This document shows, piece by piece, positions 9,150 through 61,198 of a stretch of DNA of 64,000 nt. This DNA is from Macrostomum lignano (taxonomy: Eukaryota). The position numbers were made by a program, and so were the translations under genes. Below the pieces are notes generated by a model, which searched no databases, had not been told where the DNA came from, and saw nothing but the letters and a program-made list of their open reading frames with translations. The stretch spans positions 183,846-247,845 of the forward strand of contig NIVC01002656.1 of assembly GCA_002269645.1 (NCBI GenBank), given 5' to 3'. The first letter of the stretch is position 1, and the number at the start of each line of letters is the position of its first letter.

Positions 9150-10925
9150 CAGACTCTTCGTTTGATACCCTCCGACTCTTCAATTGATACCCTCCGACTC
9201 TTCAATTGATACCCTCCGACTCTTCATTTGATACCCTCCGACTCTTCATTTGATACCCTCCGACTCTTCATTTGATACCCTCCGACTCTTCATTTGATAT
9301 CCCCAGACTCTTCATTTGATACCACCCGAACTCTTCATTTGATACCCTCAGACTCTTCATTTGATACCCTCCGACTCTTCATTTGATATCCCCAGACTCT
9401 TCATTTGATACCACCCGAACTCTTCATTTGATACCCTCAGACTCTTCATTTGATATCCCCGAATTCTTCATTTGATATCCTCAGACTCTTCATTTGATAT
9501 TCTCCGACTCTTCATTTGATATTCTCCGACTCTTCATTTGATATTCTCCGACTCTTCATTTGATACCCTCCGACTCTTCATTTGATATTCTCCGACTCTT
9601 CATTTGATACCCTCCGACTCTTTATTTGATATCCCCAGACGCTTCATTTGATACCCTCAGACTCTTCATTTGATATCCCCAGACTCTTCATTTGATATTC
9701 TCCGACTCTTCATTTGATATCCTCCGACTCTTCATTTGATATTCTCTGACTCTTCATTTGATATCCCCAGACTCTTCATTTGATATCCCCAGACTCTTCA
9801 TTTGATATCCCCAGACTCTTCATTTGATATCCCCAGACTCTTCATTTCATATCCCCAGACTCTTCATTTGATACCCTCCGACTCTTCATTTGATATCCCC
9901 AGACTCTTCATTTGATATCCCCAGACTCTTCATTTGATATCCCCAGACTCTTCATTTGATATCCCCAGACTCTTCATTTGATATCCCCAGACTCTTCATT
10001 TGATATCCCCAGACTCTTCATTTGATACCCTCCGACTCTTCATTTGATATTCTCCGACTCTTCATTTGATACCCTCCGACTCTTCATTTGATACCCTCCG
10101 ACTCTTCATTTGATATTCTCCGACTCTTCATTTGATATTCTCCGACTCTTCATTTGATATTCTCCGACTCTTCATTTGATATTCTCCGACTCTTTATTTG
10201 ATACCCTCAGACTCTTCATTTGATATCCCCAGACTCTTCATTTGATATTCTCCGACTCTTCATTTGATATCCTCCGACTCTTCATTTGATATTCTCCGAC
10301 TCTTCATTTGATACCCTCCGACTCTTCATTTGATATCCCCAGACTCTTCATTTGATATCCCCAGACTCTTCATTTGATACCCTCCGACTCTTCATTTGAT
10401 ATCCCCAGACTCTTCATTTGATATCCCCAGACTCTTCATTTGATATCCCCAGACTCTTCATTTGATATCCCCAGACTCTTCATTTGATATCCCCAGACTC
10501 TTCATTTGATACCCTCCGACTCTTCATTTGATATTCTCCGACTCTTCATTTGATACCCTCCGACTCTTCATTTGATACCCTCCGACTCTTCATTTGATAT
10601 TCTCCGACTCTTCATTTGATACCCTCCGAGTCTTCATTTGATATCCCCAGACTCTTCATTTGATATCCCCAGACTCTTCATTTGATACCCTCCGACTCTT
10701 CATTTGATATTCTCCGACTCTTCATTTGATATTCTCCGACTCTTCATTTAATATCCCCAGACTCTTCATTTGATATCCCCTCCGACTTTTCATTTGATAC
10801 CCTTCGACTCTTCATTTGATACCCTCCGACTCTTCATTTGATACCCTCCGACTCTTCATTTGATATTCTCCGACTCTTCATTTGATACCCTCCGACTCTT
10901 TATTTGATACCCTCCGACTCTTCAG
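9150..10925. repeat. 22-bp minisatellite TTTGATATCCCCAGACTCTTCA, about 80 copies
   Basis: Period 22; three interspersed variants (ACCCTCC / ATTCTCC / ATCCCCA). Confidence 0.97.
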
Positions 10926-17007: not shown

Positions 17008-17079
17008 GGGGATGTAGCTCAGAGGTAGAGCGTTCGCTTCGCATGTGAAAGGTCTCGGGTTCGAACCCCGACTTCTCCA
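17008..17079 (+). tRNA. trnA-CGC: tRNA-Ala, anticodon CGC
   Basis: 72-nt cloverleaf: D stem GCTC/GAGC, anticodon stem TTCGC/GTGAA with loop TTCGCAT, T stem TCGGG/CCCGA with TTCGAAC loop, G3:U70 Ala determinant, discriminator A; one T6:T67 mismatch. Confidence 0.93.
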
Positions 17080-18547: not shown

Positions 18548-19472
18548 AGCCTTTACCCTTGACTAGTGATAGTATTATCCAATTTTCATCCTATCACTGA
18601 CACCTAGACCTAGCTACTTGCCTACTTTGATTTGGTCAATTGGGTAGGCCTATTGTGCATATGCATAGGCCTATTGTTATGAGTATAGAGTATATTATCA
18701 ATGCTAGGTTTTTTGCTGGTACTTGGATTCAAAATCATATTTTAGCCTTATGTCTAATTTTAGAATGCTATTTCAAAAGTCAGGATGCAATAATATTTAT
18801 TACCTCTATAGTACATGACCAAGATGGCCACTATATACCAAGATGGCCATAGGCCCTAGCTCTAAATATTTTAATAGATGATAATAAGCATAGGTCTATA
18901 TATTTTACTCATTTCCTATTGGTAATAATTTGTATTAGGTATAGATCTTTAAGTTTTAAGGAGATAGATATTATGGTCTAAAATGGAAATATTTTATATT
19001 ATTATTATATTATAACAATTAAAATTATTCCCATTTCATATCTATTATTAAAACTTAAAGGTTTAGCTTCTAACTCTAGGCTTAGTCTAAATCATTCTAT
19101 TTTATTTGGTATAAGTATTTTTTAATTACTATCTTTAAAAATGTTGAATATATTATGCTTACAAAAAAATTAGATATATTTTTAGAGTTTGTTCTATTTT
19201 ACTTATTGTATTATGAATGTTAATCATATTGAAAAAGCTCCTATATTCAACTTTATAATTTGTCTTTATTATCTATGAGGTCGGGGGGGAAAAAATTTTC
19301 TTGGAACACACGGGTCTTTGCTGACACCAATGAGACAGGCAGATTTCATGTTTGAATTGCCAAAGCAGACAAATCACAACAAAATTCTTTTCTCCTGTTT
19401 TGCTCCAACTGCCAGGGTCCTCAATTCCGGGGGAAGGGTAGTCGTAATTGTAGCAAAGCAGTCATTAGAGTG

Positions 19473-19773
19473 CATACATGCGCAACCTCCAAAATTCAGT
19501 CGGCCATGCGACTTAGTTTTAACAAAAATGCGACGTAGTTTTTGGCCAAAAATGCGACTTACATGTAATTAAAAAAACCATACGCAAAATTAACGCAACT
19601 TTGGGTAAACGGCAGGAGTAACTATGACTGTCTTATTAGGTCAAAATGCCTCGTCAGCTACTTAGTAATACTACTTTGGTATTTTTTCGGGTGGGCATTT
19701 TTGCGACTTCCTTGATTGGCTGCCAAATCGGTCGGCCGGATCGGCCGACTCGGCCGACTGTTGCGCATGTATG
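19473..19773. mobile_element. hAT-type MITE copy 1 (301 bp) carrying a 28S rDNA-like segment
   Basis: 14-bp TIR CATACATGCGCAAC/GTTGCGCATGTATG; perfect 8-bp TSD TTAGAGTG (19465-72, 19774-81); second copy at 42799. Confidence 0.92.
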
Positions 19774-21777
19774 TTAGAGTGGCATGGTCATTCAAAGGAT
19801 AGACACCAGAGATTCTGACATCGTAACTTAATGTGTCATTTTGTTGAGCTGATTACTAACAGTAGGGTAGAGTTGCCACCACCATAATTTATGTATTATG
19901 GAACATTGAAGTCTTAGACTTTCTTTGTATTGAGAACTTTGGGTTGTTTTACACCCCACAGGCAAATAACTTAATATAAAGCTATGGACTTAATGAATGA
20001 ACGATTACTTATTAATATTGCTGTTTTTTGTTATTTTTGGCAATTGATATTAAAATACTAATGAAGTTTAATGTATCAATGCAAAGAGAGCTAAACAGCA
20101 AACAGCAAGGCGGGAGAGCATGGAAAACAAGCACCAGACAACATGGTATAAATAATAATATTTTCTCGCCAGAGGATGGGGCACCCATGGATTCAGTGGA
20201 TAGAAAAATATTAGCCACTACCAAAATCCTTTGCTGGCTATAACGCAAAACCTATTGAAAAATATTATTAAGGAGAATTACATTGTTTGGGGCAGGAATT
20301 GGGGCATAGCGTAGAGAGACAAAAATATATTTGATGGGGCAGAGCCCGGGCCAACTAGTGGCATGATGTCAAGACTCAGGAGCTTGCAGTGGCAAATGTA
20401 TGTAAAAATTATTTGAAATTAAAGCAAATTGATATTATTAATATCAAGTAAATTAGGCAAAAGTTAATTAATGGGGAATTAATGGGGAGCTCATAAGAAT
20501 TAAATTTCCAGTTTTATCAACTTCATTCTCAGTGGTAGATGCACTACCACTATCTACTTATTGACTTTATTGATAAATATTAGCATTGGTTAGTGTCTAG
20601 CATTGAAATGATTTTGAAAACAATTTCTTGATTTCTCGATTTTGAATTTATGGTAATAGTTGTATCTAATACCATACAATTATTTATCATATGCCTTTGA
20701 CCAAAGCTTAAAGTGATTAGTCTATGCATAGTAAAGTAATGTAGCAAAACTAAGTTAATAAAGATAATATATTAAAAATTGTTTGTTTATAGGTTTTTTA
20801 TCTATATGTGTATATGATTGATTAAAAAAGACTCAATGGAAACAAAGCGTCATTCAAATTGTTGGTTTTAAAAAAATATTTTGTAATTATAAAGGTTTTT
20901 TGCATATAGTTTTATATTACTATTATAGTTATAAGTATATAAAATATCATACTTGGGATTATGTTGGGATTAAAAATGATAAAGGATTTTTTGTTTTATC
21001 AATATGATTTAGTAAATTTGCATCTAGTACTAGTATAGCTAGCAAGCTATAAGGCGGGTACATGCTAGAACAAAATGGTCTTGCAATCTGCTAAGATGCG
21101 CAGGGTTGAATATATATATTTGGGAGTCACATAAGACTGCAACCTTGTTTGTTAGTATGTAGGGCTAGCTAACCCCTCAGTTTATTGCATTTGATGATAT
21201 GACTATCATGAGTACTCTTTCCTTAGTTTTGATTTGTGTCTTATGTTTGTTATGTGTATTTATATTAGTTTTGAAAATATAGTTATTATAAAGATAAAAT
21301 GAAATTTTAACATATGCACAACTGGCTAGGCCTAACCCAGCTAGGTGACAAGGCTAGTATATTGCAAAACTTATCAACTTAGCACCAAAAAATTGCAAGG
21401 GGTACATATGAAAATCTGAAAAAATGAAATGAATAAAATAAAACAAGAGAAAAATGAAGAAAAATGAAAGAAAAGTAGGAATAACTTATATAAGGGCCTA
21501 AAAAAACAACCAAATCAAAAGAAAAAGAGCATTAAATAGTTAAAGCCAATGAAAGAAAATATTTGAATTGCATTCAGAGCAAAGCTATGCTGCAAAAAGG
21601 CTCTCCAGATAAAGTTGTCATATTTTTTAGGAAAACTGTTGCACTAGCTGGTTAAGATTCAGGAGGTTTTGTGCATGTATATAATATTAATATTATTTTA
21701 TTTCTTCTGTTTTGTATACTACTGAAATTAGAAGCTCTTGCATTTAATTGAACAATTTAACTAATTCAGTTCAGCCA

Positions 21778-22129: not shown

Positions 22130-22534
22130 CTACGGACTCCATCAATGTCCGCTAAACGTTGCTGTCTGCAGTCAGTGGGGCCAGGCGGACCCAAACTGCT
22201 CCGGCAGACAATTGAGCAGCTTTCTGTTGATTTAGACGACGAGGATAGCGAGTCCTCCGCAGAACTCGCTTCGTTAGTGGTCTCTGCCGACGATGATGAA
22301 AAGTGCAAGAATATCGAATTCGGTAGTAACGGCAGCAGTTGTCACTATGATAGCGAAGACGCAGACCGGCAATTGAATTCCAATTTGCCAAAGCCGCTAT
22401 TTGACTCCTGGCTGACGATGTCTAAACGAGGGATGTCCAATTGTTGTCTTCGGGGCCAGGAAGCAACGTTTAAGTGGCGCATAGAAGCTGCCTGCCGCGA
22501 TCTGATGCACATGACGTTTGAAGAGGCTGTACAG
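22130..22534 (+). CDS. Same protein, exon 2
   Basis: ttacag acceptor, CAG|gtaggt donor, phase 0/0, acidic segment. Confidence 0.7.
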
Positions 22535-22621
22535 GTAGGTGTGTGTGTAGTATTCTGTAGCATTCCTGTCTACACTTATAGAGAATACAATTTGGCGTTT
22601 TTATTCACCATTTTGCCACAG

Positions 22622-24583
22622 GAGAGCCGCAGAAGGCCATTTGGTGGCGTATTGACTCGATATCGGTGCTGGAAAACTCCTGGCAGACAGCGTAGCTCGC
22701 TAGCTCTGGCTTCAACTGCGACCGCTTCCGCTAGTGAAAACCAAGACGAATCTACCGGTATAGAGTCTTTCTTAGCTTTGCTCGCTCCGCCACCGATGAC
22801 GCCTCCGGTGTCGACAGCGGCTTTGTCACAACACCCACCGCCGCCTCTGGTGTCGACAGCGGCTTCGTCACAACACCAACCACCTTCTTCGGTGTCGACA
22901 GCGACTTCATCACAACACCCACCGCCTTCTTTGGTGTCGACAGCGGCTTCGTCACAACACCCACCGCCTTCTTTGGTGTCGACAGCGACTTCATCACAAC
23001 ACCCACCACCTTCTTCGGTGTCGACAGCGACTTCATCACAACACCCACCGCCTTCTTCGGTGTCGACAGCGGCTTCGTCACAACACCCACCGCCTTCTTC
23101 GGTGTCGACAGCGGCTTCGTCACAACACCCACCGCCTTCTTTGGTGTCGACAGCGGCTTCGTCACAACACCCACCGCCTTCTTCGGTGTCGACAGCGGCT
23201 TCGTCACAACACCCACCGCCTTCTTCGGTGTCGACAGCGGCTTCGTCACAACACCCACCGCCTTCTTCGGTGTCGACAGCGGCTTCGTCACAACACCCAC
23301 CGCCTTCTTTGGTGTCGACAGCGGCTTCGTCATATCATTCACCGCCACGGCCTCAGTTACCGACAGCGGCTTCGTCACATCACCCACTGCCGCCGCCTGT
23401 GGTATCAACAGCGACTGTGCCAAAACACCCACCGCCACCACCACCATTGACTATTGCTTGCTCACCACGTCAACACCTCGGTGAATCTCCAGATCGCGAT
23501 GAAAATTACGGCCAATTCAGTTTGAAATCTTTCCTAAGCAAGCCGGCCAGGCGTGGCGAGGAGGAGTTTATCAATTTGCTTAGCGACGAAGATGAAGAGC
23601 CTCGAACAGTGGCTGCGGAATCTACTAGCAAGTCTTCGGCGTCAGCACGGGGACAGCAAACAGCGCTTGAAAGCTCATTGCAGGTGCTGATTGCTACCGA
23701 CTCGCTGCATTTGCAGCAGCCGCAGCAACCACAGCAACCAGAGCAACAGCCGCAGCAACCGCAGCAACCACAGCAACAGCCACAGCAATGGCCGCAGCAA
23801 CCACAGCGGCAGCCACAGCAACAGCCGCAGCAACCACAGCAACAGCCCCAGCAACCACAGCAACGGCCGCAGCAACCACAGCGGCAGCCACAGCAACAGC
23901 CGCAGCAACCACAGCAACCACAGTCACAGCCCCAGCAACAGCCCCAACAACCACAGCAACGGCCGCAGCAACCACAGCAACAGCCCCAGCAACCACAGCA
24001 GCAGCCGCAGCAACCACAGCAGCAGGCGCAGACTCAACCGTCTCAGCTGTCACCACAGCAAGACCTACATCGAGTAGAAGTGTTTCAGCTGCAGCAGCGG
24101 CGAATACTCCAGCACTTGCTGCAGCAACAGCAGCCGCAGCAAAGTGTGCAGCTCCTGCTGAGAAATAATGAGATCAGCCGCGGCATGCTGCTGCGCTGCC
24201 TTAGCGGTAGCTCAGTAATTTACGTTTGCCTTTCTTGCCGTCAAGTTAGCGATGGCCCGCCTGCCGCCCTGTGGCACTCGAGTGTATCCAATGCCGGCCA
24301 CTACTGCCTCACCTTGCCGTCTGGCTGGGTTGACCTTGCCTCTCTTCGCCTGACTTGCCACACCTGCACAGACAGCTGGGAGTCCAACCTGTCCATGGGC
24401 TCATTAGCCTCACTGATTGTTCATGCATTTTCTGCTCATCCGATCACCACTAGCGGACCTCTTTTGTGCGTCAGGAATACCGCATCGGGCGAGAGCTGCC
24501 TACTGACAGGGGATTGTATGGCGCGCTGTCTTCTGTACAATAAACTGTGCTTTGTCTGGCTCGAAGAAACTCCGTTGTTACAG
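22622..24583 (+). CDS. Same protein, exon 3: 14-aa repeats, poly-Q/P and a Cys/His cluster
   Basis: cacag acceptor, CAG|gtgcga donor; long open frame; YVCLSCRQ...WH...GHYC...TCHTC. Confidence 0.7.
22805..23400 (+). repeat. Coding 42-bp minisatellite (SSVSTAASSQHPPP, about 13 copies)
   Basis: Frame-preserving tandem unit inside exon 3. Confidence 0.92.
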
Positions 24584-24754
24584 GTGCGAGATTTGCTTTT
24601 TTATTACTAAGCTGATAAGTTTTGTAAAATGGGTGCCAGCATTAGCTGGGATAATTGAGGGTCATTGGACTGAACAGCCGTACGCAGCAGCCTTCAGATG
24701 CGCCGCGCAATTTAGGCAGGTGTAATAAAAAATGACTTTGCTCCCTACTCGCAG

Positions 24755-42420: not shown

Positions 42421-42798
42421 TTAATTGTGAACATTCAATGCAAACTAGAACAGTTTAAAAACAGCAGTATGAGCAGCAGTTTAAGCAATTAGGGTATATG
42501 ATATAGCTATACATGAAAATTTAGCATGAAAATTGCAAGCTAGAATAGTTTAAAAATAGCAATATGAGCAGCAGTTTAAGCCTCAAACAACAGGCAACCT
42601 ATACTTTAGCGGATAATAGGTGTCGCAGCTTTCATTGTTCTGCTAAAGCTGTATTTGTACTGTGAGCTCCACATTTCTGGCAGCTCAAAGTAATACCTAT
42701 TGAGCTTTGCACCAGTGATTTAAATGCAGTATGCAGACGTGTGTACAAAGATGAGAAAGACAAAAGCCATTCCTTTGTATGCTCACTATTGTGTAGAT

Positions 42799-43096
42799 CA
42801 TACATGTGCAACCTCCAAAATTCGGTCAGCCGTGCGACTTAGTTTTAACAAAAATGCGACGTAGTTTTTGGCCAAAAATGCGACTTACATATAAAAAAAC
42901 CCAAAAGCAAAATTAACGCAACTTTGGGTAAACGGCAGGAGTAACTATGACTGTTTTATTAAGCTAAAATGCCTCGTCAGCTACTTAGTACTACTCTTCA
43001 GGTTATTTTTTGGGTGGGCATTTTTGCGACTTCCTTGATTGGCCGCCAAATCGGTCGGCCGGATCGGCCGACTCGGCCGACTGTTGCGCATGTATG
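42799..43096. mobile_element. hAT-type MITE copy 2 (298 bp) carrying a 28S rDNA-like segment
   Basis: TIR CATACATGTGCAAC/GTTGCGCATGTATG; perfect 8-bp TSD GTGTAGAT (42791-98, 43097-104); colinear with 19473-19773. Confidence 0.92.
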
Positions 43097-43214
43097 GTGT
43101 AGATGTAGCTCAATTGCAGCAGCTGCTTGTGCTGTAGACTGGACTCGGGCACTGATATAGATTCCCTTCCATACTCTAAACAATTCTTGCACATTGCAAA
43201 TCTGGTCAAAAACT

Positions 43215-43450
43215 ATCTCTATCTTTTAATTTTGAGTCTCTTATTATATATCGGTTATAACAATCCTAATACTAAAGTTGGTGCGATGATTGTTTGTTTG
43301 TTTGTTTGTTTGTCTGTTTGTTTGTGTGTTGCATAACTCCTCCTAGAATACTTGCAAGTCAGCGTTGAAACTTATATGGGTAAACTGCAAATTTTCCAGG
43401 GACTGCAGTGGGCTATTTCAATTTTTTATTTTCACATTTTAAGATCCCTA
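43215..43450 (+). mobile_element. Possible 5' part of a non-autonomous Helitron-like element
   Basis: TC-start AT-rich head, (TTTG)n tract, then GCATAACTCC...GAAACTT, a layout common in Helitron-derived elements; no 3' hairpin/CTRR located. Confidence 0.3.
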
Positions 43451-46400
43451 AAAAAGCAGAAAACTGCAATCTTGACCTTTGATAATCTTATTTGTCCCCT
43501 CTTTCTGCTCGGAGCTGATAAAATGCATCAATTTTGATTGCTTGCGCCATAACTTTCTCCTATCTCGCCAGTGCATTTCTCTCCAGTTGGGGGATGGGGC
43601 GTTCTAAGTGGCTGCGTGTGTACAATTGGACCCTAGCTCACTGGCGCACTGTATAGATGATTGCGCAATGATTTGGCTACTGTTAAGTTGTTCTGCCTTT
43701 CAATATGAAGCCTGTGTATTGTAGGACAGTTAAATTCATTGCATAACCTGCGAGTCGCTTTAACAGGCGGTGAGCGTACACTCGATATTTCAATGCTTTA
43801 AATCGGAAAGTTGTAAACGCTAACTGCTCCTCGAGTTCTAAACTTTAAGAGAAGAGACTTATATTGCCGGAAAGAGCTTGCAACACTGAGTTTGGAGGTA
43901 TAAGTTGTTTGCTTTAAATATGAAAACAAAAAGGACAGCATTCAAAAACTATTTCCGAACTTTTAACTTTCTGCAAAGATTGCACTTAGTTTCGCGAGAC
44001 GTAATAGATAAAGTTATGGGAAGGGTTCAACTTTTTACTGCCACTGTGTATTGGAGGGTTGATTTAGATTGCGCAATCATTTTGTTAACTTTACCTGAGC
44101 CTGAACTGACTAAATGAGAAATCGGTTGCGCAATAAATTGATTCAATTAATTCAATATTCTTATCGGCGGCTTTCAACCCGCAGCTCTGTGCAGCTCTAA
44201 CCCTAACCCTAGACCACTGATGGCACTGAACCCTGAGAGTTGAGTTCTTTTTGACGGAGAAAATTTTGATTGAGTCCAGTTTTACGGAGAGGATTTCGAT
44301 GGTTTTCAGTTTCACGGAGAGGATTTCTGTTTCACGGAGAGGAGTTTGATGGATTTGGAGATGTTTTGATGATGGGATTCGGGTCATGGGATTCAGCTAA
44401 GGGGTTTCAGGGAATGGAATTCCGGTGATGGGAGTTCTTCCCCTTTCTCCTCCATCAGAGGAGTTGGCCTCGTACTCAAATAATTTTACTTCAGCTATAC
44501 AACAAATTTGAGCATTGATTGAATTAAAAAATCATTATATAAAATAAGTACTAAAATAAATATACTATAAAATATTTTATAATATTATATTTATAATATT
44601 TTATAATAAACCTTTGTATTGTATAGTTTTTTATACTTTAAAAAAAACTAAGATGTATTCTAAATTTATTTTTAATGAGCATTCTGACAATTAAATACTA
44701 TACAGTGTACCATACAAAAATATTACTTAAATAAGTAATGTAAATAGTAGTAATGTAACCACTCAAATCCACAAAGTCTTGTTATGAACTTGTGAATATA
44801 TGTAATATATGACAGTGTGACCAACATATACAATGGTACAACATGTATAACAAAGGGCCCTTGTAGAAATGAATGATGTATAATGTATACAATAGCCAGC
44901 CTTAATATACCATAGAAATTTCCATTATATGTCTATCCTTCCTTCTATCCTTCTATCCTTCTTTCTCTATATCTATCCTTCTGCACTATGTTAGCTATAG
45001 CATATGGGCCCTATTTATAGTAGAACAATATATATATAGCTATAGGTTTAACTGCAATCAATCAAGTGTAGACTGCAATATAGCAGAACCTAGAAAAACT
45101 ATTGAAAGAGGCATCTAGGCATGCAAGATGCTTAGACCAATGTCAATGAACTGACAACTACCACAAGGACAAACTTAGGGTCCTTTTTTGGATAAAGAAG
45201 CCCCGATGCTAATCTAAATGCTAGGCAAATAAAATATAATTAATCATATTAAAATATTCAGTAGGCCCTAAGTTATACTATAGGCATTGGAACATTTTAA
45301 AAATTGAGAAAGGCAACTGGCAAGACCATTGATGCTCCTCTTGCCTCTCTGTTCTGATATCTATGATCATGATATCCTATTCATTTGTTATAATCAATTA
45401 ATTACTAATCAAATAGATCTTGGATCTTAGATCTAACTAAATCTAATCTATATTTTAGTCTTTGTCTCTATGAGATATAAGAGTAGCAAATAGCTATTTA
45501 AATAGCTAAAAAATTATAATTTTAGCCTCCTATTTAGAAAATATATATTAAAAGTTCCTAAAAAAGGAGGGGTGATAAGTACTATTGATGCTCCCTTCCC
45601 ACTTTCAAAGACATCCCCTTTCTCATTAGACAACACCAATAAGCCAGATGGCACTTCCATTGCAAGGGGCCAATCTGTGCCAGATGCTGTCTACAATAAT
45701 GGCCCTTGGCTATAAAAGGCCATAGCTAAGCCTATAGCAAATTCCCACTCCTGAATCCTGAATCATTCATTTTTTCCAGTGTATAGTAGACCTAAAAATA
45801 TGTTGGCAATATAGTATCTAGCATACCCAATAGCTATTTCATCATAAATTTATGCACCACTGTGCTGGCATATGGCATAGCAATAGTGGCATAATATAAA
45901 TTACTTTTTAAAGCAATTTTTGTTAAAAGTACTAAAACAAAATACAAAAAAACACGAAAACAATCACTATTCTTTCATTTAAAGATTCCTCTGTTTAAAA
46001 ATAGCTTTAAAATTGATACCTAAAATGTGAGTTAAATTTGGCATAGCATTGCAATTTTGTGCAACATTTTTTCTGGCATAAACTTTAATATATAGCATAA
46101 AAGGTCATTTTTCTAGCATACGATATAATAGATTTGAGAGTGTGATAGCAAGTCTATTTGTATTAGATTTATTATTAGTCTTTTTATTCAAGCAAATGAG
46201 ATTTATAAAATGAATTAAAAATATTTTTAAAAATAACTTTGAAAGTCTCACTGGAATCTTTTATTATATTTAGCTCTGTAATTATACTTAAGTAGATTTA
46301 ATAATATAGTTAGGTAAATGCTTTTGTATTAGGTCAATAAATGTTTTAGTTTGCCAATTTTAGATCTAGCCTTAGTTGGCACTTAGTGTTTTAAATGTAC

Positions 46401-46809
46401 TATAAAATTGTACAAACATTCATTTTAAAATACAAAAAGTGAATAATGCATTTATTTTAATTAAATATAATGCACATTTGAATTGTGTCCTAGATTAATT
46501 TCTAACAAAAACCTATCTAAGTAACAAAGACCAGATCCCAAGCAGGCCTCCCACATCCCAATGACAATCCTAAAGTATAGCATGATTTGAAACATCATTG
46601 CCTTGTAGACATCTTTTAGATAAAAAGCAAACTCCACTCCATTAGTAGCCATGGGCATAGATCAAAGAGGTTCCTTTTTGACGACTAAAGTTTTTATTAT
46701 GACAAAAGTATATAAATCTTTATTAAGTTGATGCATGAGTAAAATGAAACAGTAATCACTCAACAAGCCTTGGTTTTCATCCTTATTGTTAAAATTAAAT
46801 TGTTTCCAG

Positions 46810-46952
46810 TCGCAGCCACTACTAGCTGCAGACGAGTCTGGTTCGGCTTTTGCCGACGAAGCCAAATTACTTAATGATGACGCTCTGGAGCGGCTGGCCA
46901 GGCGTCGGTCGCAGGCGGCTCCATCGGATCCTCTGCAGAGAATGACGGCTAG
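46810..46952 (+). CDS. NCAPH: Condensin I kleisin (CAP-H/barren), first recognisable exon
   Basis: LLNDDALERLARRRSQ matches NCAPH NDDEKERLQRRRSR; ttccag acceptor, AG|gtgagc donor (phase 2; see finding on phase mismatch); start codon not located. Confidence 0.7.
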
Positions 46953-46970
46953 GTGAGCGTATTTGGCTGT

Positions 46971-47563
46971 GAGGCTGTACAATGGCCCTGCTGATAGATT
47001 TTACAGGCTGTACAATGGCCCTGCTGATATCTAGATTGTACAGGCTGTACAATGGCCCTGCTGATATCTAGATTGTGCAGGCTGTACAATGGCCCTGCTG
47101 ATATCTAGATTGTACAGGCTGTACAATGGCCCTGCTGATATCTAGATTGTACAGGCTGTACAATGGCCCTGCTGATATCTAGATTGTGCAGGCTGTACAA
47201 TGGCCCTGCTGATAGATTGTGCAGGCTGTACAATGGCCCTGCTGATATCTACAGTGTAGATTGTGCAGGCTGTACAATGGCCCTGCTGATATCTAGATTG
47301 TGCAGGCTGTACAATGGCCCTGCTGATAGATTGTGCAGGCTGTACAATGGCCCTGCTGATATCTAGATTGTGCAGGCTGTACAATGGCCCTGCTGATATC
47401 TAGATTGTGCAGGCTGTACAATGGCCCTGCTGATAGATTGTGCAGGCTGTACAATGGCCCTGCTGATATCTAGATTGTGCAGGCTGTACAATGGCCCTGC
47501 TGATATCTAGATTGTACAGGCTGTACAATGGCCCTTCTGATATCTAGATTGTACAGGCTGTAC
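46971..47563. repeat. 37-bp (33-bp variant) minisatellite in NCAPH intron
   Basis: GGCTGTACAATGGCCCTGCTGATATCTAGATTGTGCA, about 16 copies. Confidence 0.95.
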
Positions 47564-47760
47564 GGGGTCATGCTCATCTTGTATTGTGTCCTGTACATGA
47601 CTGCTGCTGTTCACTGTGTTAGTCTGTAGTAAATATGTACATGGCAGCATGTTAGAGAATATCTTGTCTGCGCCTGTTTTATCCAATTCACCTTGCTCGA
47701 GATTAGAAGTACATTGTGTATAGTTCATAATTCTAATAGCTTTAATTGAGTCACTAACAG

Positions 47761-48079
47761 TTCGCTAACGCTGCTCTAACAATGCCGAACCTCAGGGAGC
47801 TCAGCGACCACTACGAGAATTGCATCAAACTATCGGTCGAAGGGAAGATCTCTTCCAAGAATGCCTTCGCATTGCACCTGATCGACTACCTGCAGGGCAC
47901 GGTGAAGGGCATCGACAATTTCCAGCTGGCCAGCAGTTCGCTGGACGCCGGCGCCAAAATCTACGCCGGCCGAGTGGACGCCGTCCACCGCGAAGCTTAC
48001 AAAGTCATGGGCGGACTTGGCCGAAACGATGCCAACCCGGCTGCTGCGGACTCGGACGGTGATGAGGAGGCCGGAGGAG
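47761..48079 (+). CDS. NCAPH: NCAPH exon, conserved N-terminal kleisin domain
   Basis: DHYENCIKLSVEGKISSKNAFALHLIDY...NFQLASSSLDAGAKIYAGRVDAVHREAYKVMGGLG; G|gtaggt donor, phase 1. Confidence 0.95.
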
Positions 48080-48121
48080 GTAGGTGGAAGTGCGAGTAGC
48101 TCAGTGCTACCTGAGCCAGTT

Positions 48122-48385
48122 CATGTACATTCCTCTTATATCTGCACCCATTCCAAATGCACATTCCCCATCCGCTATGTACATTCCCTCATATCTGCAC
48201 CCATTCCAAATGCACACTCCCCATCTGCTATGTACATTCCCTCATATCTGCACCCATTCCAAATGCACATTCCCCATCCGCTATGTACATTCCCTCATAT
48301 CTGCACCCATTCCAAATACACACTCCCCATCTGCTATGTACATTCCCTCATATCTGCACCCATTCCAAGTGTACATTCCCGATCT
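48122..48385. repeat. 53-bp minisatellite in NCAPH intron, about 5 copies
   Basis: TGTACATTCCCTCATATCTGCACCCATTCCAAATGCACACTCCCCATCTGCTA. Confidence 0.93.
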
Positions 48386-48501
48386 ACAATGCACATTCCA
48401 TCACGACTGTCACCCATGCGCAATGGACATATCATAGCCACCAGTCAAGCGCGTTCTTTCTTACAGAATCAATCTATCTACCATTTTAAATCGCTCTCCA
48501 G

Positions 48502-49189
48502 CCGCCGCAGCCGAAGTCGCAGGTGACGACGAGGCCATGCTGGCAGCCCGCGCCGCCGCCGCGGCCAAACGGCGCCAGCGCAAGCGCAAGGCCGTAATCG
48601 CTACTAGCCTGACGCGCATCCGCCTGAAGCCGGCCTCCCTACGCTTTGATGTTGACCCGCTGTTCCACCAGCAGGCGGCCGCCTACGATAACGGCGGCAC
48701 CGGGGAGATGCGTCTTAACAACGTGTGCGTCATTGACAATGACTGCGAGATCCTGCTGGACTCCGATGCTACGCTCAATCTGGGCCGCCAGTCCGTGCTA
48801 GCCATCGCCAACGTGGCCTGGTCGGATCCGCCTTGCGACCTGCCCACGCCTGGAGTGGGAGCCCTGGCAACCGTTGCTAGGTCGGCTGCGCATACTATCT
48901 GCGGTCACTATGCGAACTTTGTGTTTGCCAATCCGACAGCTCGCGTTAATGGTGCCGAAAATGACGAGTCGTTGATTGCGACTGTGGCTCCGGTGGCCTC
49001 CCAGGCCCAGGATTTGTCTGCTGCCGATCCTCCCGATGTCGATATGGTCGATGACGACGACGACATTGTCGATGACGATGCACGCGACGACCACGCTGGC
49101 GTTGATGCGACGCTGGCGTCCGCGGTTGCTGATGATAACGCCGGTGGCGATGTCACAATTGTGCCAGGTGGAGCCACCAGCGCCACTGT
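48502..49189 (+). CDS. NCAPH: NCAPH exon
   Basis: ctccag acceptor, phase 1; LRFDVDPLFHQQAAAYDNGGTG (DPLF motif), ICGHYANFVF; GT|gtgagt donor, phase 2. Confidence 0.9.
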
Positions 49190-49249
49190 GTGAGTGCCAT
49201 TTTGTGAGTGACGTTATGTCACTCCTGTGCTAGCGTCCGCTGTGCGTCA

Positions 49250-49755
49250 CTAGTGTGCGTCACTCTAATGTTAGTGTGCGTCACTCTAGTGCCACTGTGC
49301 GTCACTCTAGTGCCACTGTGCGTCACTCTAGTGCCACTGTGCGTCACTCTAGTGCCACTGTGCGTCACTCTAGTGCCACTGTGCGTCACTCTAGTGCCAC
49401 TGTGCGTCACTCTAGTGCCACTGTGCGTCACTCTAGTGCCACTGTGCGTCACTCTAGTGCCACTGTGCGTCACTCTAGTGCCACTGCGTCACTCTAGTGC
49501 CACTGTTCGTCACTCTAGTGCCACTGCGTCACTCTAGTGCCACTGCGTCACTCTAGTGCCACTGCGTCACTCTAGTGCCACTGTGCGTCACTCTAGTGCC
49601 ACTGCGTCACTTTAGTGCCACTGCATCACTCTAGTGCCACTGTGCGTCACTCTAGTGCCACTGCGTCACTCTAGTGCCACTGCGTCACTCTAGTGCCACT
49701 GCATCACTCTAGTGCCACTGTGCGTCACTCTAGTGCCAGTGTGCGTCACTCTAGC
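49250..49755. repeat. 21/19-bp minisatellite GTGCGTCACTCTAGTGCCACT in NCAPH intron
   Basis: About 25 copies. Confidence 0.95.
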
Positions 49756-49822
49756 TACATGTAAACAGATTAACTCATTTTATTACCAAAGCCAGCTCTT
49801 TCTCTCACTTAACTCTTACCAG

Positions 49823-50373
49823 CTGCTCCGTAAGCTTCATCGATGGCCTTCGCGATTTACTATGGGGCGACGAGTCCGATTGGGAGCTGGGCGGGCAGCG
49901 GCAGGCCAGCTTCCGGCTTGGCGCTTGGACCGGGCCCGCTCAGTGGCGGCGCAAATGCCGCCTGACATCTATCGGCGGCGTGTTCGGACCGGCCAGGCTG
50001 CCAGCAGCCGCCGCAGCCGAACAGTCGCATGACAATCCGGCTGACCAGGGCGAGTCCGCTGCCGGCCCGCCGTCTGCAAAGCGGCCTCGTCGATCAACAA
50101 CGGCTGCCGCGGCCGCCTTGAAGGCCCAAACCAACCGACTGTTAAGCGCCGAACGGATCGACTGGCTCGCCAAGCTGGCTAAGCCGCAGCGGACCGACAA
50201 TAAAATGAGCGACTGCGTTGTGAACGCCAATATGAATCGGGTCCTGGATTTGCCGCCACCAGCTGCGCCTCGGGCCTCGACTATTGGCCCGGATAATTCT
50301 GTTGCTTTTTTTAAGGGCGGCTTATTGAGCCTTACTATTGATAGTCGGCACGTGGTTCGGTTTAGCGCCGCTG
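49823..50373 (+). CDS. NCAPH: NCAPH exon
   Basis: taccag acceptor, phase 2; GAWTGPAQWR matches NCAPH WAGPDHWR; G|gtgagt donor, phase 1. Confidence 0.88.
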
Positions 50374-50499
50374 GTGAGTTTTAGTCATTCTTGATTGGTG
50401 GAGAGATTCGCGAGCTCTGATTGGCTGCGGGTCGCTTTACAATGTCGAAATTTTACATCATTGGAATCAAATTCATGGGACAATGGGATCTCTAATTAG

Positions 50500-50950
50500 G
50501 GAATCATACCTGACTAACAGGCTCTAATTAGCAATTAGTACCTGACTAGCGGGGTCTCTAATTGGGGATTAGTACCTGACTAGCGGGGTCACTAATTAGG
50601 TATTAATACCTGACTAGCGGGGTCTCTAATTACGTATTACTACCTGACTAGTAGGATCTCTAATTAGGGATTAATACCTGACTAGTAGGATCTCTAATTA
50701 GGGATTAATACCTGACTAGTAGGATCTCTAATTAGGGATTAATACCTGACTAGTAGGATCTCTAATTATGGACAGTGGGACCTCCATAATTAGGGATTTA
50801 TACCTGAGTAATAGGATCTCTAATTAGGGATTAATACCTGACTAGCGGGGTCTCTAACTAGGGATTACTACCTGTCTAGTAAGGATCTCTAATTATGGAC
50901 AGTGGGACCTCCATAATTAGGGATTTATACCGGAGTAATGGTATCTCTAA
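50500..50950. repeat. 34-bp minisatellite AATACCTGACTAGTAGGATCTCTAATTAGGGATT in NCAPH intron
   Basis: About 12 diverged copies. Confidence 0.88.
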
Positions 50951-51119
50951 TTAGATTTTATTAACTGAATAGTTTTTGACAGTGTGAAAATTTTGACGTT
51001 TTGAAATTTCGACAATGGGAAATTGAGTCGTTGGTTGTGTAGCAAGAGAGTGAAGGTTGAGGGGGGCTGTACACCGAGGCTCATTTAAGCTCCACATTGA
51101 ATAAACGATGAACTCTCAG

Positions 51120-51526
51120 ATGTCGGCAAGCAGACGGACACTGGCAGCGACGAAGAAGATTGTAGCGACGACTCTAACAACAATCGGCGCCCTGCTCTGC
51201 ACGACTTTGCCGGCGTTAACGAAGACGAGGACGATCATCATGGCGGCTATGAAGAATTCGACGAAGGCTACGAGGGCGCGACGAGGTCTTTTGCTAATTT
51301 TCGAACTGCTCTCGACGCTGAAGGCGTTGGAGATAATCAGGACTACGATATGCTGAACTGCTCTGATCAGCAGCGGCTTTGGCAGCAGCAGAAGAGCGGT
51401 TTCCTAGATAATATGTCGCAGGCGCCTGGCTATCAGGTGCGTCAGGTCATGATCGACTACGCCAAGACTGCTAAGCGGATTAACGTTAAACGGCTTAAGA
51501 CTAGCATGTGGCGACTGTTGGCTCAG
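51120..51526 (+). CDS. NCAPH: NCAPH exon
   Basis: ctctcag acceptor, phase 1; acidic stretch then IDYAKTAKRINVKRLKTSMWRLL (C-terminal kleisin motif); CAG|gtacaa donor. Confidence 0.92.
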
Positions 51527-51616
51527 GTACAAAATATTTGTTCGAGGCACATTGATTCTGATGCAGTCCTTGAAATTTTCCACAACATTGTTCCATTGTT
51601 GCTGAGCAGTGCACCA

Positions 51617-51962
51617 TGATTTCAATCCTGTACACAATGATCTCAAATCCTGTACACTATGATCTCCAATCCTGTACACTATGATCTCCAATCCTGTACA
51701 CTATGATCTCAAATCCTGTACACTATGATCTCAAATCCTGTACACTATGATCCCAAATCCTGTACACTATGATCTCAAATCCTGTACATTATGATCTCAA
51801 ATCCTGTACATTATGATCTCAAATCCTGTACACTTATGATCTCAAATCCTGTAGACTATGATCTCAAATCCTGTACATTATGATGTCAAATCCTGTACAT
51901 CATAATCACAATCCTGTACAGCATTATCTCAATCTTGTACACCATGACCTCAATCCTGTCCA
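51617..51962. repeat. 22-bp minisatellite ATGATCTCAAATCCTGTACACT in NCAPH intron
   Basis: About 15 copies, degenerating to the right. Confidence 0.92.
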
Positions 51963-52089
51963 ATCAGCATGACCCAATTCCTATGGCGCTATCTTCTACA
52001 ACACACCTTTAAAATCAGTATACTGCTGCCCAATACTGAGTGCAACCGCCTGTCATTTCCAACTGTTTGCGCTCTCTCACTAAATCCAG

Positions 52090-52308
52090 CCGGACGGCAT
52101 AGGAATTGAGAATCAGCAGCAGCCCGCCAGCAGCAGTCAGGAAAGCGCCGCTGCCGCGGACGCCGAGGATCAATGGATGCCCGACTCGCCGGCTTCGTTT
52201 GCCAGCATGCTGGAGCTGCTGCCTCGTCAACTTGGCAGCGCTGCCGCTGTGGAGGATCTGTCCGTGTCTATAGTGTTCACCTGTCTGCTGTACCTGGCAA
52301 ATGAGAAG
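52090..52308 (+). CDS. NCAPH: NCAPH exon
   Basis: atccag acceptor, phase 0; FASMLELLP...LSVSIVFTCLLYLANEK; AAG|gtgagg donor. Confidence 0.93.
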
Positions 52309-52438
52309 GTGAGGACCAGAGAAATCCATCTTTCTTTCATAGCTTATCGAAAATTTTGATGGTAAAATGCGATGATAGGCTACTATCAGTAGCGTACAGA
52401 GGCCTGATTTTTCTTATCTCCCCGTGATCACCTTGCAG

Positions 52439-52678
52439 AAACTGGATCTATCTTCATCGGCTAGTCTAGCTGATATCATCGTGAGTCCAAAAGCTCCCGA
52501 CGATCCGGAACTGCTGGCTGCGCAGGGGCTGAAACTGCTGACAGCCAAGAAAAGCAAGACAAAGATGAAGAAACTAAAGAAGCCCGCTCGCAGTGGTCAG
52601 GGTGAAAAGCGCCAATACACCCTGAACGAAATCTGGGGATCCAGCGATGAAGATGATGAGGCAGATGAAGTTGTCTGA
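52439..52678 (+). CDS. NCAPH: NCAPH last exon with a basic/acidic C-terminal extension
   Basis: ttgcag acceptor, phase 0; KLDLSSSASLADIIV continues the kleisin C-terminus; TGA at 52676. Confidence 0.85.
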   Translation, partial: KLDLSSSASLADIIVSPKAPDDPELLAAQGLKLLTAKKSKTKMKKLKKPARSGQGEKRQYTLNEIWGSSDEDDEADEVV

Positions 52679-53132
52679 TTTAAAAAATAATTAAGATTCC
52701 AATTTTTAGACTAAAGGAAAGCTGATTAGTTTAAGCAAAAGGTGCAGCAAAACATTTCTTTAGAATTAGAATCCAACCTTGGTCGAATTAGCATCTGCGT
52801 TTTTATCTGTTTAGGTGCTCAAATTTCGAAGAGCCTACTGCTAGTAGCTCTTTTTGTCAAACTTATTTTCAAAAAATGTTCCAATTTTGTTCTCAAGATC
52901 TTTGTGTGCCTATTATTTTTCACATTTAAATGCTTCTTTGCAATTTGATTCACATTGTAGTGCACGCCAATTACAAATAGGCTTTGCAATTGTTTTTTTG
53001 TGCAGTCTAGCACTGTCTATTATTCTATTTGTAATGTGACTGTTGATCACATTGTACCCATTTTTGTTCACCTTTCAGGTGTGAGAGACAGATCGGAGTG
53101 CCAGTGCAATAGTGTTAGTGCGTAGTGTCAAT

Positions 53133-53692
53133 GTGGCAGCCAATCACAGTGCATCTAGGAGAGAGATAAGAGTCACAGTGTTATCAGTAAAGTGCGGCAG
53201 CCAATCACAGTGCATCTAGGAGAGAGATAAGAGTCACAGTGTTATCAGTAAAGTGCGGCAGCCAATCACAGTGCATCTAGGATAGAGATAAGAGTCACAG
53301 TGTTATCAGTAAAGTGCGGCAGCCAATCGCAGTGCATCTAAAAGAGAGATAAGAGTCAGTGTTATCAGTAAAGTGCGGCAGCCAATCGCAGTGCATCTAA
53401 AAGAGAGATAAGAGTCAGTGTTATCAGTAAAGTGCGGCAGCCAATCACAGTGCATCTAGGAGAGAGATAAGAGTCACAGTGTTATCAGTAAAGTGCGGCA
53501 GCCAATCGCAGTGCATCTAGGATAGAGATAAGAGTCACAGTGTTATCAGTAAAGTGCGGCAGCCAATCGCAGTGCATCTAGGATAGAGATAAGAGTCACA
53601 GTGTTATCAGTAGAGTGCGGCAGCCAATCGCAGTGCATCTAAAAGAGGGATAAGAGTCAGTGTTATCAGTAAAGCGCGGCAGCCAATCACAA
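53133..53692. repeat. 61/59-bp minisatellite with CCAAT and GATA motifs, about 9 copies
   Basis: GCAGCCAATCACAGTGCATCTAGGAGAGAGATAAGAGTCACAGTGTTATCAGTAAAGTGCG. Confidence 0.95.
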
Positions 53693-54252
53693 TGCTGCTA
53701 AAGCGATAAAACAAAGGTCCTCGTGTACTTTCCGAGCTTTATTTTCATTCTTTTGCAATATCGGAAAACATTTGTAGCATTTGTTTATTTTTTGCAAAAA
53801 CATATCCTAAAGCGCACCTAATTTGTTTTCTATTGTTCTTTATTATCACTTGCTTTTCTAAGCAGTTTCGTCCAAGTTTAACATCAATTGCAATTCCCGC
53901 AAAGCATAAGCAAATCTGCATTAATATTAGCCAGTAAAAATCTCACAGTAAATTGGTGCTGTATTTTTCCAGATATTCAGTTTTTTAGTTTTGCTGTTTA
54001 AAAGAAAGCATTTTTATTTGGTTTTTCTTGCAAAAGAATGGCTTGCCAAAATACAAGCAGCTTGCTCAACTGCTTCTCGCAGCTTTTTACGCTGTTCTGA
54101 ATTTCAGAAGTACTATTTGTACTTTGATTGCCAGTACAACTACAATAGAAATATAGAATTTGTAAGCATTGGTATCCCCTGTGAGACTCTTACTTCGGAG
54201 GCTAATGAGATCTCTGCACATTGTGGTACGCTTTTCTCTCAGAAATCTCCCT

Positions 54253-54665
54253 CATGAGATTCCACCCACAATCTCCACCCATGAGATTCCACTTACAATC
54301 TCCACCCATGAGATTCCACTTACAATCTCCACCTATGAGATTCCACCCACATTCTCAACCCATGAGATTCCACTTACAATCTCCACCCATGAGATTCCAC
54401 TTACAATCTCCACCCATGAGATTCCACTTACAATCTCCACCCATGAGATTCCACTTACAATCTCCACCCATGAGATTCCACCCACAATCTCCACCCATGA
54501 GATTCAACCCACAAATTTCCATCCATAAGATTTCACCCACAAATTTCAGCCCATGAGATTCCACCCACAATCTCCACTTATGAGATTCCACCCACAATCT
54601 CCACCTATGAGATTCCACCCACAATCTCCACCTATGAGATTCCAACCACAAATTTCCATCCATGA
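54253..54665. repeat. 27-bp minisatellite ATGAGATTCCACTTACAATCTCCACCC, about 15 copies
   Basis: Direct inspection. Confidence 0.94.
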
Positions 54666-54782
54666 TATTCCACAGTTTTTATGAAGTTTTATGCATTTTT
54701 TTTCTATTTTACTTCAATTTTGCATCAAAATAGTTCATTATTACTACTTAACTACTTACAGCGGCAGTAGTACAGCTGCGAC

Positions 54783-55097
54783 ATGGATCGGTTTCGGGCT
54801 TCGCTAACAGCCGGGGAGTTGCATTATTTGTCTAGCAGCAACACTAAGCCCTATCGGCTATTTAAGCAGGACAGATCTCCGGTTATCGCTGCGGCTGTTA
54901 AAGGCAAAGCTTTCGATCGGAAGCTCAAGTCTGAGTGGGCCGCGCTGGACTTGTCGTCTAAGCTATACTACTGCCAGCGTGCCGACTGCTTTCCTGACAA
55001 GAGGAAGCTGGACTTCATCCGCCAGTGCAGGTTTCATGCGGCGTCTTCGTCAACTAGCGAAAACTATGATTTAGACTTCGAGCGGAAGCCTTGTGGG
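54783..55097 (+). CDS. HMG-box-like protein, exon 1
   Basis: KPYRLFKQDRSPVIAAAVKGKAFDRKLKSEWAALDLSSKLYYCQRA fits the HMG-box pattern (Y-x-L-F...W-x-x-L...K-x-x-Y); GGG|gtgagt donor, phase 0. Confidence 0.65.
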
Positions 55098-55415
55098 GTG
55101 AGTCACCGGAGCTATAGTTGTGTGTGTCTTCGGCTCAGCGGAAGCCTTGTGGGGTGAGTCACCGGAGCTATAGTTGTGTGTGTGTGCGGCTCAGCGGAAG
55201 CCTTGTGGGGTGAGTCAGCGGAGCTATAGTTGTGTGTGTGTGCGGCTCAGCGGAAGCCTTGTGGGGTGAGTCACCGGAGCTATAGTTGTGTGTGTGTGCG
55301 GCTCAGCGGAAGCCTTGTGGGGTGAGTCACCGGAGCTATAGTTGTGTGTGTGTGCGGCTCAGCGGAAGCCTTGTGGGGTGAGTCACCGGAGCTATAGTTG
55401 TGTGTGTGCGGCTCA
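55083..55415 (+). repeat. 56-bp tandem repeat made of the exon-1 end plus donor, 6 copies
   Basis: CGGAAGCCTTGTGGG|GTGAGTCACCGGAGCTATAGTTGTGTGTGTGTGCGGCTCAG. Confidence 0.97.
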
Positions 55416-55459
55416 CTGGCCCCATAGTTTCGCTTATTCATATTGGGCAGAAACACTTT

Positions 55460-56105
55460 GATTCTCAACTACACCCTCAGATCCTCAGCAATGCTCTCAG
55501 ATCCTCAGCAACACTCTCAAATCCTCAGTACCACTCTCAGATCCTCAGCAGCACTCTCAAATCCTCAACCACACTCTCAGATCCTCAGCTGCACTCTCAG
55601 ATCCTCAGCAGCACTCTCAGATCCTCAGCTGAACTCTCAGATCCTCAGCAACACTCTCAAATCCTCAGTACCACTCCCAGATCCTCAGCAGCACTCTCAA
55701 ATCCTCAACCACTCTCTCAGATCCTCAGCAATACTCTCAGATCCTCAGCAACACTCTCAGATCCTCAGCAACAATCTCAGATCCTCAATCACATTCTCAG
55801 ATCCTTAGCAACACTCTCAAATCCTCAGCAACACTCTCAGATCCTCAACAATACTCTCAGATCCTCAGCAACACTCTCAGATCCTCAGCTGCACTCTCAA
55901 ATCCTCAGCCACACTCTCAGATCCTCAGCAACACTCTCAATCCTCAGCTGCACTCTCAAATCCTCAACCACACTCTCAGATCCTCAGCCGCACTCTCTGA
56001 TCCTCAGCAGCACTCTCAAATCCTCAATCACACTCTCAGATCCTCAACCACACTCTCAGATCCTCAGCTGCACTCTCAGTTCCTCAGCAACACTCTCTGA
56101 TCCTA
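55460..56105. repeat. 20-bp minisatellite CACTCTCAGATCCTCAGCAA, about 32 copies
   Basis: Direct inspection; same intron as the 56-bp array. Confidence 0.93.
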
Positions 56106-56159
56106 AGGCTGAGCCGTACCTCTCAATTGTCAAAGTTAATGTCCATTAAAATATCCCAG

Positions 56160-56804
56160 CCGCTATCCCCTATCCATGAGCAACCCTATCCAACTCCTCA
56201 TTGGCAAACAAAGACACCAAAAGCAGCTCCGGGCAAAGCTGCATCGTCTGCTTCAACATCGGCTTCGGCTTCTTCCGCTGCTGCAACTGCCGCTAGCGGC
56301 ATCGGGCGCTACCAGCCGATCCGGCCGCGCCTGCTGCCGCCATTCCAGTCGCTTCTGTCTCGCCGAGTCGCTTCAGACCCGGCCGGCAGCAGCTCGGTTG
56401 ACGACTCCGTACAGCTGATTGGCATCGAGTATCCGCCTGCGGCTAAGCGGCCCCGAGTTGCCGCTAGTAGCACTGTCCGGCCGCCGCCACTATTGCCAGC
56501 GTCCTCAGCCACATCAACGCCATCGTCGGCCAATTCAACTGCCGCGTTTCAATTGCCGCTGCCGCCTCAGCAGCAGCAGCAACAGCAGCAACAGCCTATC
56601 GCGCTATCTTTGCCAGTTCCTCACTACTGCGCCTATAACAGTCATCCTGGCTTCAATAATAATTGTTCGCTTCAAATTTCTCCGCCCTCAATACAGCCGC
56701 CGCCGCCGCCGCCGCCGCAATTTCAACAACCCCGATATCAGCAGCAGCAGCAATCTGTTTACAATTCTTACTGGCAATTTTATTATTCGGCCTATTGCGC
56801 CAAT

Positions 56805-56838
<34 letters not shown>

Positions 56839-61166: not shown

Positions 61167-61198
61167 GTCGCGCCACCCCTCAGAGCTGACCAGTCACA

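Follow-up and report, generated by a model that had tools for sequence, protein, structure and literature searches.

A small element in the genome of the flatworm Macrostomum lignano holds, between terminal inverted repeats (TIRs), a piece of DNA that reads like the stretch of the 28S rRNA gene spanning the R2, Pokey and I-PpoI site. How did a fragment of an rRNA gene come to lie inside a DNA transposon, and is it a passive load or a working part of the element? We followed these questions in a stretch of 64,000 nucleotides (the window; positions 3762-67761 of NIVC01001664.1, assembly GCA_002269645.1, Mlig_3_7), to which all coordinates refer unless another locus is named. About 0.25 Mb of the host genome was examined, comprising the loci L001, L002 and L123-L131, which were reached through proteins.

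The element and its copies

The preliminary description of this DNA reported a 301-bp element with a 14-bp TIR and an 8-bp target-site duplication (TSD), and exactly this structure is present at 19473-19773 (copy A). It is intergenic, with a tRNA-Ala gene (17008-17079) as its left neighbour and a low-complexity 821-aa ORF (22145-24610) as its right neighbour. The 64-mer quoted there as 28S-like is found, letter by letter, at 19603-19666. The features of copy A and of a second copy, B, are the following.

19465-19472, no strand: left TSD of copy A, TTAGAGTG, by direct reading; same letters as 19774-19781
19473-19486, plus strand: left TIR of copy A, CATACATGCGCAAC, an inverted repeat complementary to GTTGCGCATGTATG at 14/14 positions
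19497-19505, plus strand: 9-bp subterminal inverted repeat CAGTCGGCC, which pairs with GGCCGACTG at 19752-19760 (9/9 complementary) and prolongs the TIR
19506-19574, plus strand: subterminal direct repeat ATGCGAC(T/G)TA..., present three times at a spacing of 22-24 bp (repeat families D1-D3)
19587-19666, plus strand: 28S rDNA-derived module, in the sense orientation of the rRNA (blastn against real LSU, Rfam, alignment)
19630-19643, plus strand: altered core of the module, 28S CTCTCTTAAGGTAGCC changed to CTGTCTTATTAGGTCA, spanning the I-PpoI/Pokey TTAA and the R2 site (alignments)
19702-19714, plus strand: right-hand copy of the subterminal repeat, TGCGACTTCCTTG, with GCATTTTTG just before it (repeat families D6, I6 and I7)
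19731-19759, plus strand: right subterminal CGGCCGA repeats and palindrome (repeat families I2 and I5)
19760-19773, minus strand: right TIR of copy A, GTTGCGCATGTATG (inverted repeat and TIR pattern search)
19774-19781, no strand: right TSD of copy A, TTAGAGTG (direct reading)
42791-42798, no strand: left TSD of copy B, GTGTAGAT; same letters as 43097-43104
42799-43096, plus strand: copy B of the MITE, 298 bp, 92% identical to copy A, with TIR matches of 13/14 and 14/14
42926-42989, plus strand: 28S-derived 64-mer of copy B, identical to that of copy A at 60/64 positions and to 28S, ungapped, at 51/64
43097-43104, no strand: right TSD of copy B, GTGTAGAT (8/8)

The subterminal direct repeats are presumed to be binding sites of the transposase. 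On the right side of copy A, GCATTTTTG is inverted relative to 19523-19531 and 19547-19555, and an additional copy of the subterminal repeat reads TGCGACTTCC. No ORF inside the element exceeds 45 aa (the longest have 43-45 aa), and its six-frame peptides, searched as a chimeric query against 5.8 billion proteins, gave zero matches. Folding of the single-stranded DNA gave the expected pairing of the TIRs in both copies (z = -5.1 in copy A and -3.1 in copy B).

The TIR pattern occurs four times in the 64-kb window, against an expectation of 0.46. Copies A and B are bordered by different perfect 8-bp TSDs (TTAGAGTG and GTGTAGAT) and lie in unrelated flanks. Because copy B has its own TSD and flanks unrelated to those of A, the family is genuinely mobile, and a fortuitous inverted repeat can be dismissed. 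With its TIRs, differing TSDs, small size, absence of coding capacity and multiple insertions, the element is a MITE. Copy B lies 128 bp upstream of a gene call for condensin subunit 2 (Cnd2, 43224-49986). Five isolated substitutions between the two copies (element positions 9, 26, 30, 34 and 249) are all changes of CpG to TpG or CpA, which may point to cytosine methylation or deamination at this repeat; the remaining A/B differences are gathered in three clusters.

A partial and diverged relative, copy C, about 70% identical, was found at about 9303-9521 of locus L125 (contig NIVC01000032.1), roughly 480 bp upstream of a Cnd2 paralogue. It has a right TIR (GTTGCGCATGTACG) and the same 28S-like module, which is about as diverged (~70%) as the remainder of the element. 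Apart from this diverged partial copy, no young copies were detected in the seven further M. lignano loci L124-L130 (~195 kb), and the whole analysis of variation presented here draws on the three copies A, B and C. A weak nhmmer match in L124 was rejected as a further copy, being an artefact of copy C flank that had been included in the profile. We also rejected the idea that B and C are one old insertion in front of duplicated Cnd2 genes, as B is 92% identical to A and its TSD is intact. The position of both copies near Cnd2 genes may reflect a promoter-proximal preference or a sampling bias around Cnd2. Outside the host sequences, a MITE-specific 25-mer was absent from metagenome contigs, and the 28S pattern was absent from viral contigs.

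Instead of a clean empty site, paralogous loci have a complex replacement at the position of copy C. Relative to L125 9340-9538, the loci L124 (2825-2889) and L130 (4037-4101) have about 65 nt of unrelated sequence with an 8-bp palindrome in it (ATCTTATC...GATAAGAT); this stretch could be an excision footprint or a replacement. A further insertion or deletion of 356 bp distinguishes L125 (8874-9229) from L124 and L130.

The element was initially called a hAT-type MITE. Its MITE nature is borne out by the TIRs, TSDs and copies, and the 8-bp TSD, a feature of hAT elements, is present in both A and B. The TIRs of hAT elements begin with 5'-YARNG, and the start of this TIR, CATAC, does not fit at positions 3 and 5. 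Because the TIR departs from the hAT motif, the hAT label is left with the 8-bp TSD alone. The hAT target preference is nTnnnnAn; T is found at position 2 in 3/3 sites (TTAGAGTG, GTGTAGAT and the right flank of copy C, CTTGTATA) and A at position 7 in 1/3. Pfam scans of 30 ORFs of the window detected host genes only and no transposase domain. The superfamily is presumably one that makes 8-bp TSDs, with hAT as a first guess. The P superfamily, which has an 8-bp TSD and a THAP-domain transposase, may be an alternative, as the TSD length fits.

The surroundings of the two copies have features of their own. Part of the region is held more than once in the assembly: L002 (NIVC01002656.1) is 100% identical to 49373-64000 over 14,628 bp, and the end of NIVC01000815.1 (L123) is 99.66% identical to 45075-59027 and stops before the copy B site. 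These duplicate contigs could be assembly redundancy or a very recent duplication in a neopolyploid genome. Minisatellites are dense between 49230 and 63030 (at about 49230-49754, 50485-50954, 51609-51966, 53132-53702, 54240-54673, 55081-55415, 55448-56112, 61672-62217 and 62565-63028), and one repeat of about 32 nt occurs, by self-matches, on both sides of a DUF938 gene (58232-59229 and 60174-60593). This gene (59376-60086, plus strand) is a single-exon gene for a DUF938 / METTL26-like methyltransferase whose gene call starts upstream of the first ATG; beyond M. lignano, even the best matches of its protein, with vertebrates, green algae and bacteria among them, reach an identity of only about 50%. 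The 821-aa ORF to the right of copy A (plus strand) encodes about 15 tandem PPPS(S/L)VSTAASSQH units and a long QQPQQP tract, with cysteine-rich, non-repetitive ends.

Origin and age of the 28S-derived module

As a reference for the 28S gene, we retrieved 120 environmental eukaryotic rDNA loci from metagenomes with a conserved 41-mer and built a column consensus from the 63 loci that had enough flank; the consensus represents environmental eukaryotes and not the host's own 28S. It reads GGGTAAACGGCGGGAGTAACTATGACTCTCTTAAGGTAGCCAAATGCCTCGTCATCTAATTAGT, which is, letter for letter, the 28S sequence given in the preliminary description. The alignment figures given there are likewise exact against the 63-locus consensus: the 64-mer of copy A has 53/64 identities ungapped, and seven of the 11 mismatches fall inside AGGTAGCC. 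One of the reference loci, L103, is a complete rDNA unit, with an LSU match of 2998 bits. In this environmental unit, 5S rRNA, U2 snRNA and 13 tRNA genes follow within the next 2.3 kb, an unusual linkage that is unrelated to the MITE.

When the whole 64-kb window was compared by blastn with 25 long rDNA loci (~250 kb), only two places matched, 19587-19666 (E 3.6e-13) and 42910-42989 (E 1.9e-10). The module and 28S share collinear exact runs of 11, 15 and 13 nt. Rfam cmscan places the piece at positions 2255-2310 of the LSU_rRNA_eukarya model (RF02543) with 13.3 bits (E 0.99), covering 56 of 3401 model positions and not reaching the gathering score of 50. Because the score is far below gathering, the piece in copy A is a fragment and not an rRNA gene. 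Homology is solid over the 64-mer and weaker over the 16 nt upstream of it (19587-19602), so that the module occupies element positions 115/131-194; on the other side, in each of the copies A, B and C, it breaks off abruptly after ...TTAGT. In the helix at model positions 2255-2273, two changes disrupt base pairs with no compensating change, and nothing suggests a conserved RNA fold or an RNA function of the module.

The three copies share derived changes relative to 28S. GGCGGG has become GGCAGG, 3 nt have been gained before TTAAG (giving TTA-TTAAG or ATA-TTAAG), and GTAGCC has been replaced by three nt, a loss of 3 nt. At CTCT and CATCT, copy C still has the letters of 28S and copies A and B do not; conversely, A and B retain the 28S state at several sites that are altered in C. 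Since the derived changes are common to all three copies and each side retains 28S states of its own, the piece was captured once, before the subfamilies split. Comparison of the copies indicates that, at the time of this single old capture, the flanks hardly differed from 28S and the core had already changed. The view that a DNA transposon captured an rDNA piece spanning the R2/Pokey/I-PpoI site and dispersed it, as first proposed for this locus, thus holds for two copies and a diverged relative.

Acquisition of the 28S piece and alternative explanations

We consider it likely that the element is a non-autonomous, cut-and-paste MITE, a multicopy 'Pack-TIR' in which the 28S piece is a passive filler passenger. 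A transposase encoded elsewhere would recognise the 14-bp TIRs and the subterminal repeats, excise the MITE and reinsert it with duplication of 8 bp of target. The source of these 64-80 bp or so, copied a single time, would be a 28S rRNA gene or an rDNA pseudogene with a small scar already in it. The likely route of capture would be template switching as an internally deleted element underwent gap repair, and the piece would since have been carried along passively. A parental element with these ends that lacks the piece was not found in the host sequence examined (about 0.25 Mb). It lies mid-element, between sequence derived from the left end and sequence derived from the right end, and is read as filler because filler is expected between end-derived parts in the products of gap repair. 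rDNA is an abundant template for such switching. As in other Pack-TIRs, a segment derived from a host gene, here of 64-80 bp, is found between the two ends of a TIR element. For most Pack-TIRs of animals, a majority of them hAT elements, gap filling or template switching has been inferred (PMC8277862).

A less passive role for the piece is conceivable and, in our judgement, unlikely: it may have been co-opted as a cis-acting part, a putative transposase-binding or spacing module, and kept as it helps mobilisation. Its 3' half reads AAAATGC...GCTACTTAGT, which resembles the subterminal repeat AAAATGCGAC(T/G)TAGT, and the A/B-specific changes CATCT>CAGCT and CTAATT>CTACTT raise the match to the repeat from 7/10 to 9/10. 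When 19643-19666 is set against 19506-19560, the A/B substitutions turn TCTAATTAGT into GCTACTTAGT, the repeat being GCGACTTAGT. These two substitutions, which bring the 3' end of the piece closer to the subterminal repeat, may hint at co-option. The flanks of the piece are also invariant between A and B, like the subterminal repeats, and the A/B differences cluster in three other zones. However, these arguments are post hoc and draw on two or three copies, the module of copy C has diverged about as much as its surroundings, and nothing shows that a protein binds the repeats.

It is distinctly unlikely that the choice of the piece was non-random, the ancestral element lying in or next to a 28S gene and its transposase using a TIR-like stretch of 28S either as a cryptic end or for a template switch. 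The stretch in question follows the captured piece directly in real 28S: 14 nt, GACGCGCATGAATG, match the right TIR GTTGCGCATGTATG at 11/14 positions in the same orientation. This motif is present in 57/63 LSU loci (for example beside the captured stretch at L103:3346-3470, minus strand); for the rest of rDNA, the rate of equally good matches is about 0.03 per kb per strand. The 28S homology of A, B and C stops exactly at the motif boundary. The layout of the element speaks against it. Between the piece and the real TIR lie about 95 bp of subterminal sequence, an arrangement that neither simple cryptic-end use nor TIR-primed switching produces. In addition, the left side has no TIR-like motif better than 8/14, and the observation was made post hoc. 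Together, the TIR-like motif and the resemblance to the repeats would fit either a putative microhomology-guided switching or a putative later co-option as a binding site.

The core of the piece needs separate consideration, also where the piece is taken as passive filler. If the mismatches to 28S were placed at random, at least seven of 11 would fall in some 8-nt window with P = 1.35e-4. In a gapped alignment this run of mismatches resolves into a gain of 2-3 nt, a loss of 2-3 nt and one substitution, which is very few events. Between A and B, the 64-mer differs by four length-preserving transitions, all at element positions 160-170, in the core, with no difference at the 49 flank positions (P about 6e-4, post hoc). 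A variable triplet in the core reads TCA in A, CTA in B and ACT in C. The core is the most variable spot in the three copies, although the data behind this are very few, and a purely neutral passenger does not predict the A/B clustering. No conserved structure that would account for the variability appeared when A and B were folded as single-stranded DNA. The intact core CTCTCTTAAGGTAGC(C) of the I-PpoI, Pokey and R2 target is absent from A, B and C, which show the 3-nt gain, the 3-nt loss and substitutions. The 15-bp I-PpoI site (properties in PMC9587614) is destroyed in all three.

In a reading that we hold to be very unlikely, the dispersed copies would preserve flanks recognised by a nuclease or retrotransposon specific for the 28S site, or by the transposase of the element itself, which may see a TIR-like and repeat-like stretch in 28S. 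Repeated hits at the core would then have given each lineage its own core variant. If true, the MITE family would be a genome-wide target mimic, or a DNA transposase would have a natural pseudo-end inside the rRNA gene.

Highly improbable is the proposal of the preliminary description that the dispersed copies are decoys or ectopic landing pads for R2, Pokey or a homing endonuclease, the mutated cores being scars or escape variants. No R2, Pokey or homing endonuclease is known from M. lignano. In favour of the proposal, the TTAA / AAGG-TAGCC core has changed most relative to 28S; all A/B differences within the 64-mer lie there, and C carries yet another version of it. The 64 bp do not diverge uniformly in any of the three copies, their changes being concentrated in the core, so this check does not refute the idea of an escape from cleavage, but no positive evidence speaks for it. 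The changes themselves argue against it: the 3-nt gain and loss are common to A, B and C and were made once, before the family diversified, and the later A/B differences are four length-preserving transitions and not end-joining indels. The I-PpoI site is gone from every copy, and insertions of other elements, including the R2-like or piggyBac insertions that had been suggested as a check, were found in none of the three copies, which are far too few to rule them out. R2 lineages are present in other flatworms (Platyhelminthes; PMC5035012). KolobokP, which encodes an I-PpoI-like nuclease, was considered as a link and rejected, since its paper mentions neither 28S targeting nor flatworms.

A chance resemblance to 28S with a fortuitous TIR and TSD, to which the low Rfam score might point, is refuted by the blastn matches to real LSU (E 1e-10 to 1e-13) at the sole rDNA-like spots of the window, the three collinear exact runs, the excess of TIR patterns and two full copies with separate TSDs, and is next to impossible.

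Significance and comparison with known systems

If the element is, as we think likely, a Pack-TIR with a 28S filler, it is a clean example of a rare class, with rDNA as cargo instead of a protein-coding gene, in a flatworm model with working transgenesis. It would also explain a scatter of short rRNA-like fragments near genes, as in the case of copy B and condensin subunit 2, which is relevant to repeat masking, to rRNA-contamination filters and to the mapping of small RNAs. Should the core variability or the TIR-like motif hold genome-wide, it would connect, in a testable way, a DNA transposase with the rDNA site that is the most heavily targeted in eukaryotes.

In the literature searched, we found no published description of this MITE family and no paper linking M. 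lignano with MITEs. The initial statement that no family like this has been described is nevertheless too strong, as rDNA-derived modules of transposable elements and multicopy animal Pack-TIRs are both on record (PMC10946416, PMC4994717, PMC8277862). Modules derived from rDNA are found in SINE28 (PMC4994717), in the IGS repeats of Pokey and in 5S-derived SINEs (all in PMC10946416). Multicopy Pack-TIRs are rare, with 4 cases (1.4%) in a survey of 100 animal genomes that does not mention M. lignano (PMC8277862).

The animal Pack-TIRs of that survey (Tan et al. 2021, PMC8277862), which are non-autonomous hAT or Tc/mariner elements, resemble the M. lignano MITE in having host DNA between end-derived parts, several copies and distinct TSDs. 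Their capture is likewise explained by gap filling or template switching, and hAT is their commonest carrier. Their cargo is protein-coding, whereas the M. lignano MITE carries a piece of an rRNA gene. In Drosophila, the hAT MITE Mar (PMC3517528) shares the small size, 8-bp TSD, short TIRs and absence of coding potential; the M. lignano MITE differs from it in the CATAC start of its TIR, which is not YARNG, and in its rDNA piece.

Other systems share the rDNA component. The mammalian SINE28 (Longo et al. 2015, PMC4994717) is, like this MITE, a dispersed family with a segment derived from 28S rDNA, but it is a retrotransposed class I element, in contrast to a cut-and-paste TIR element with an 8-bp TSD. 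A fish R2 lineage whose 3' UTR contains 28S-like sequence (Kojima et al. 2016, PMC5035012) has also taken up 28S sequence from close to its target. It is a retrotransposon with a specific target, and its 28S piece is linked to a target shift, whereas any targeting role of the piece in the M. lignano MITE would be hypothetical. Pokey and mPok of Daphnia (piggyBac; PMC10946416), a DNA transposon and MITE family, likewise have internal sequence derived from rDNA and are connected with this same 28S site. Pokey inserts in the TTAA of 28S and carries repeats derived from the IGS, whereas the M. lignano MITE has 8-bp TSDs, is inserted outside rDNA and has the target region of 28S as its own cargo.
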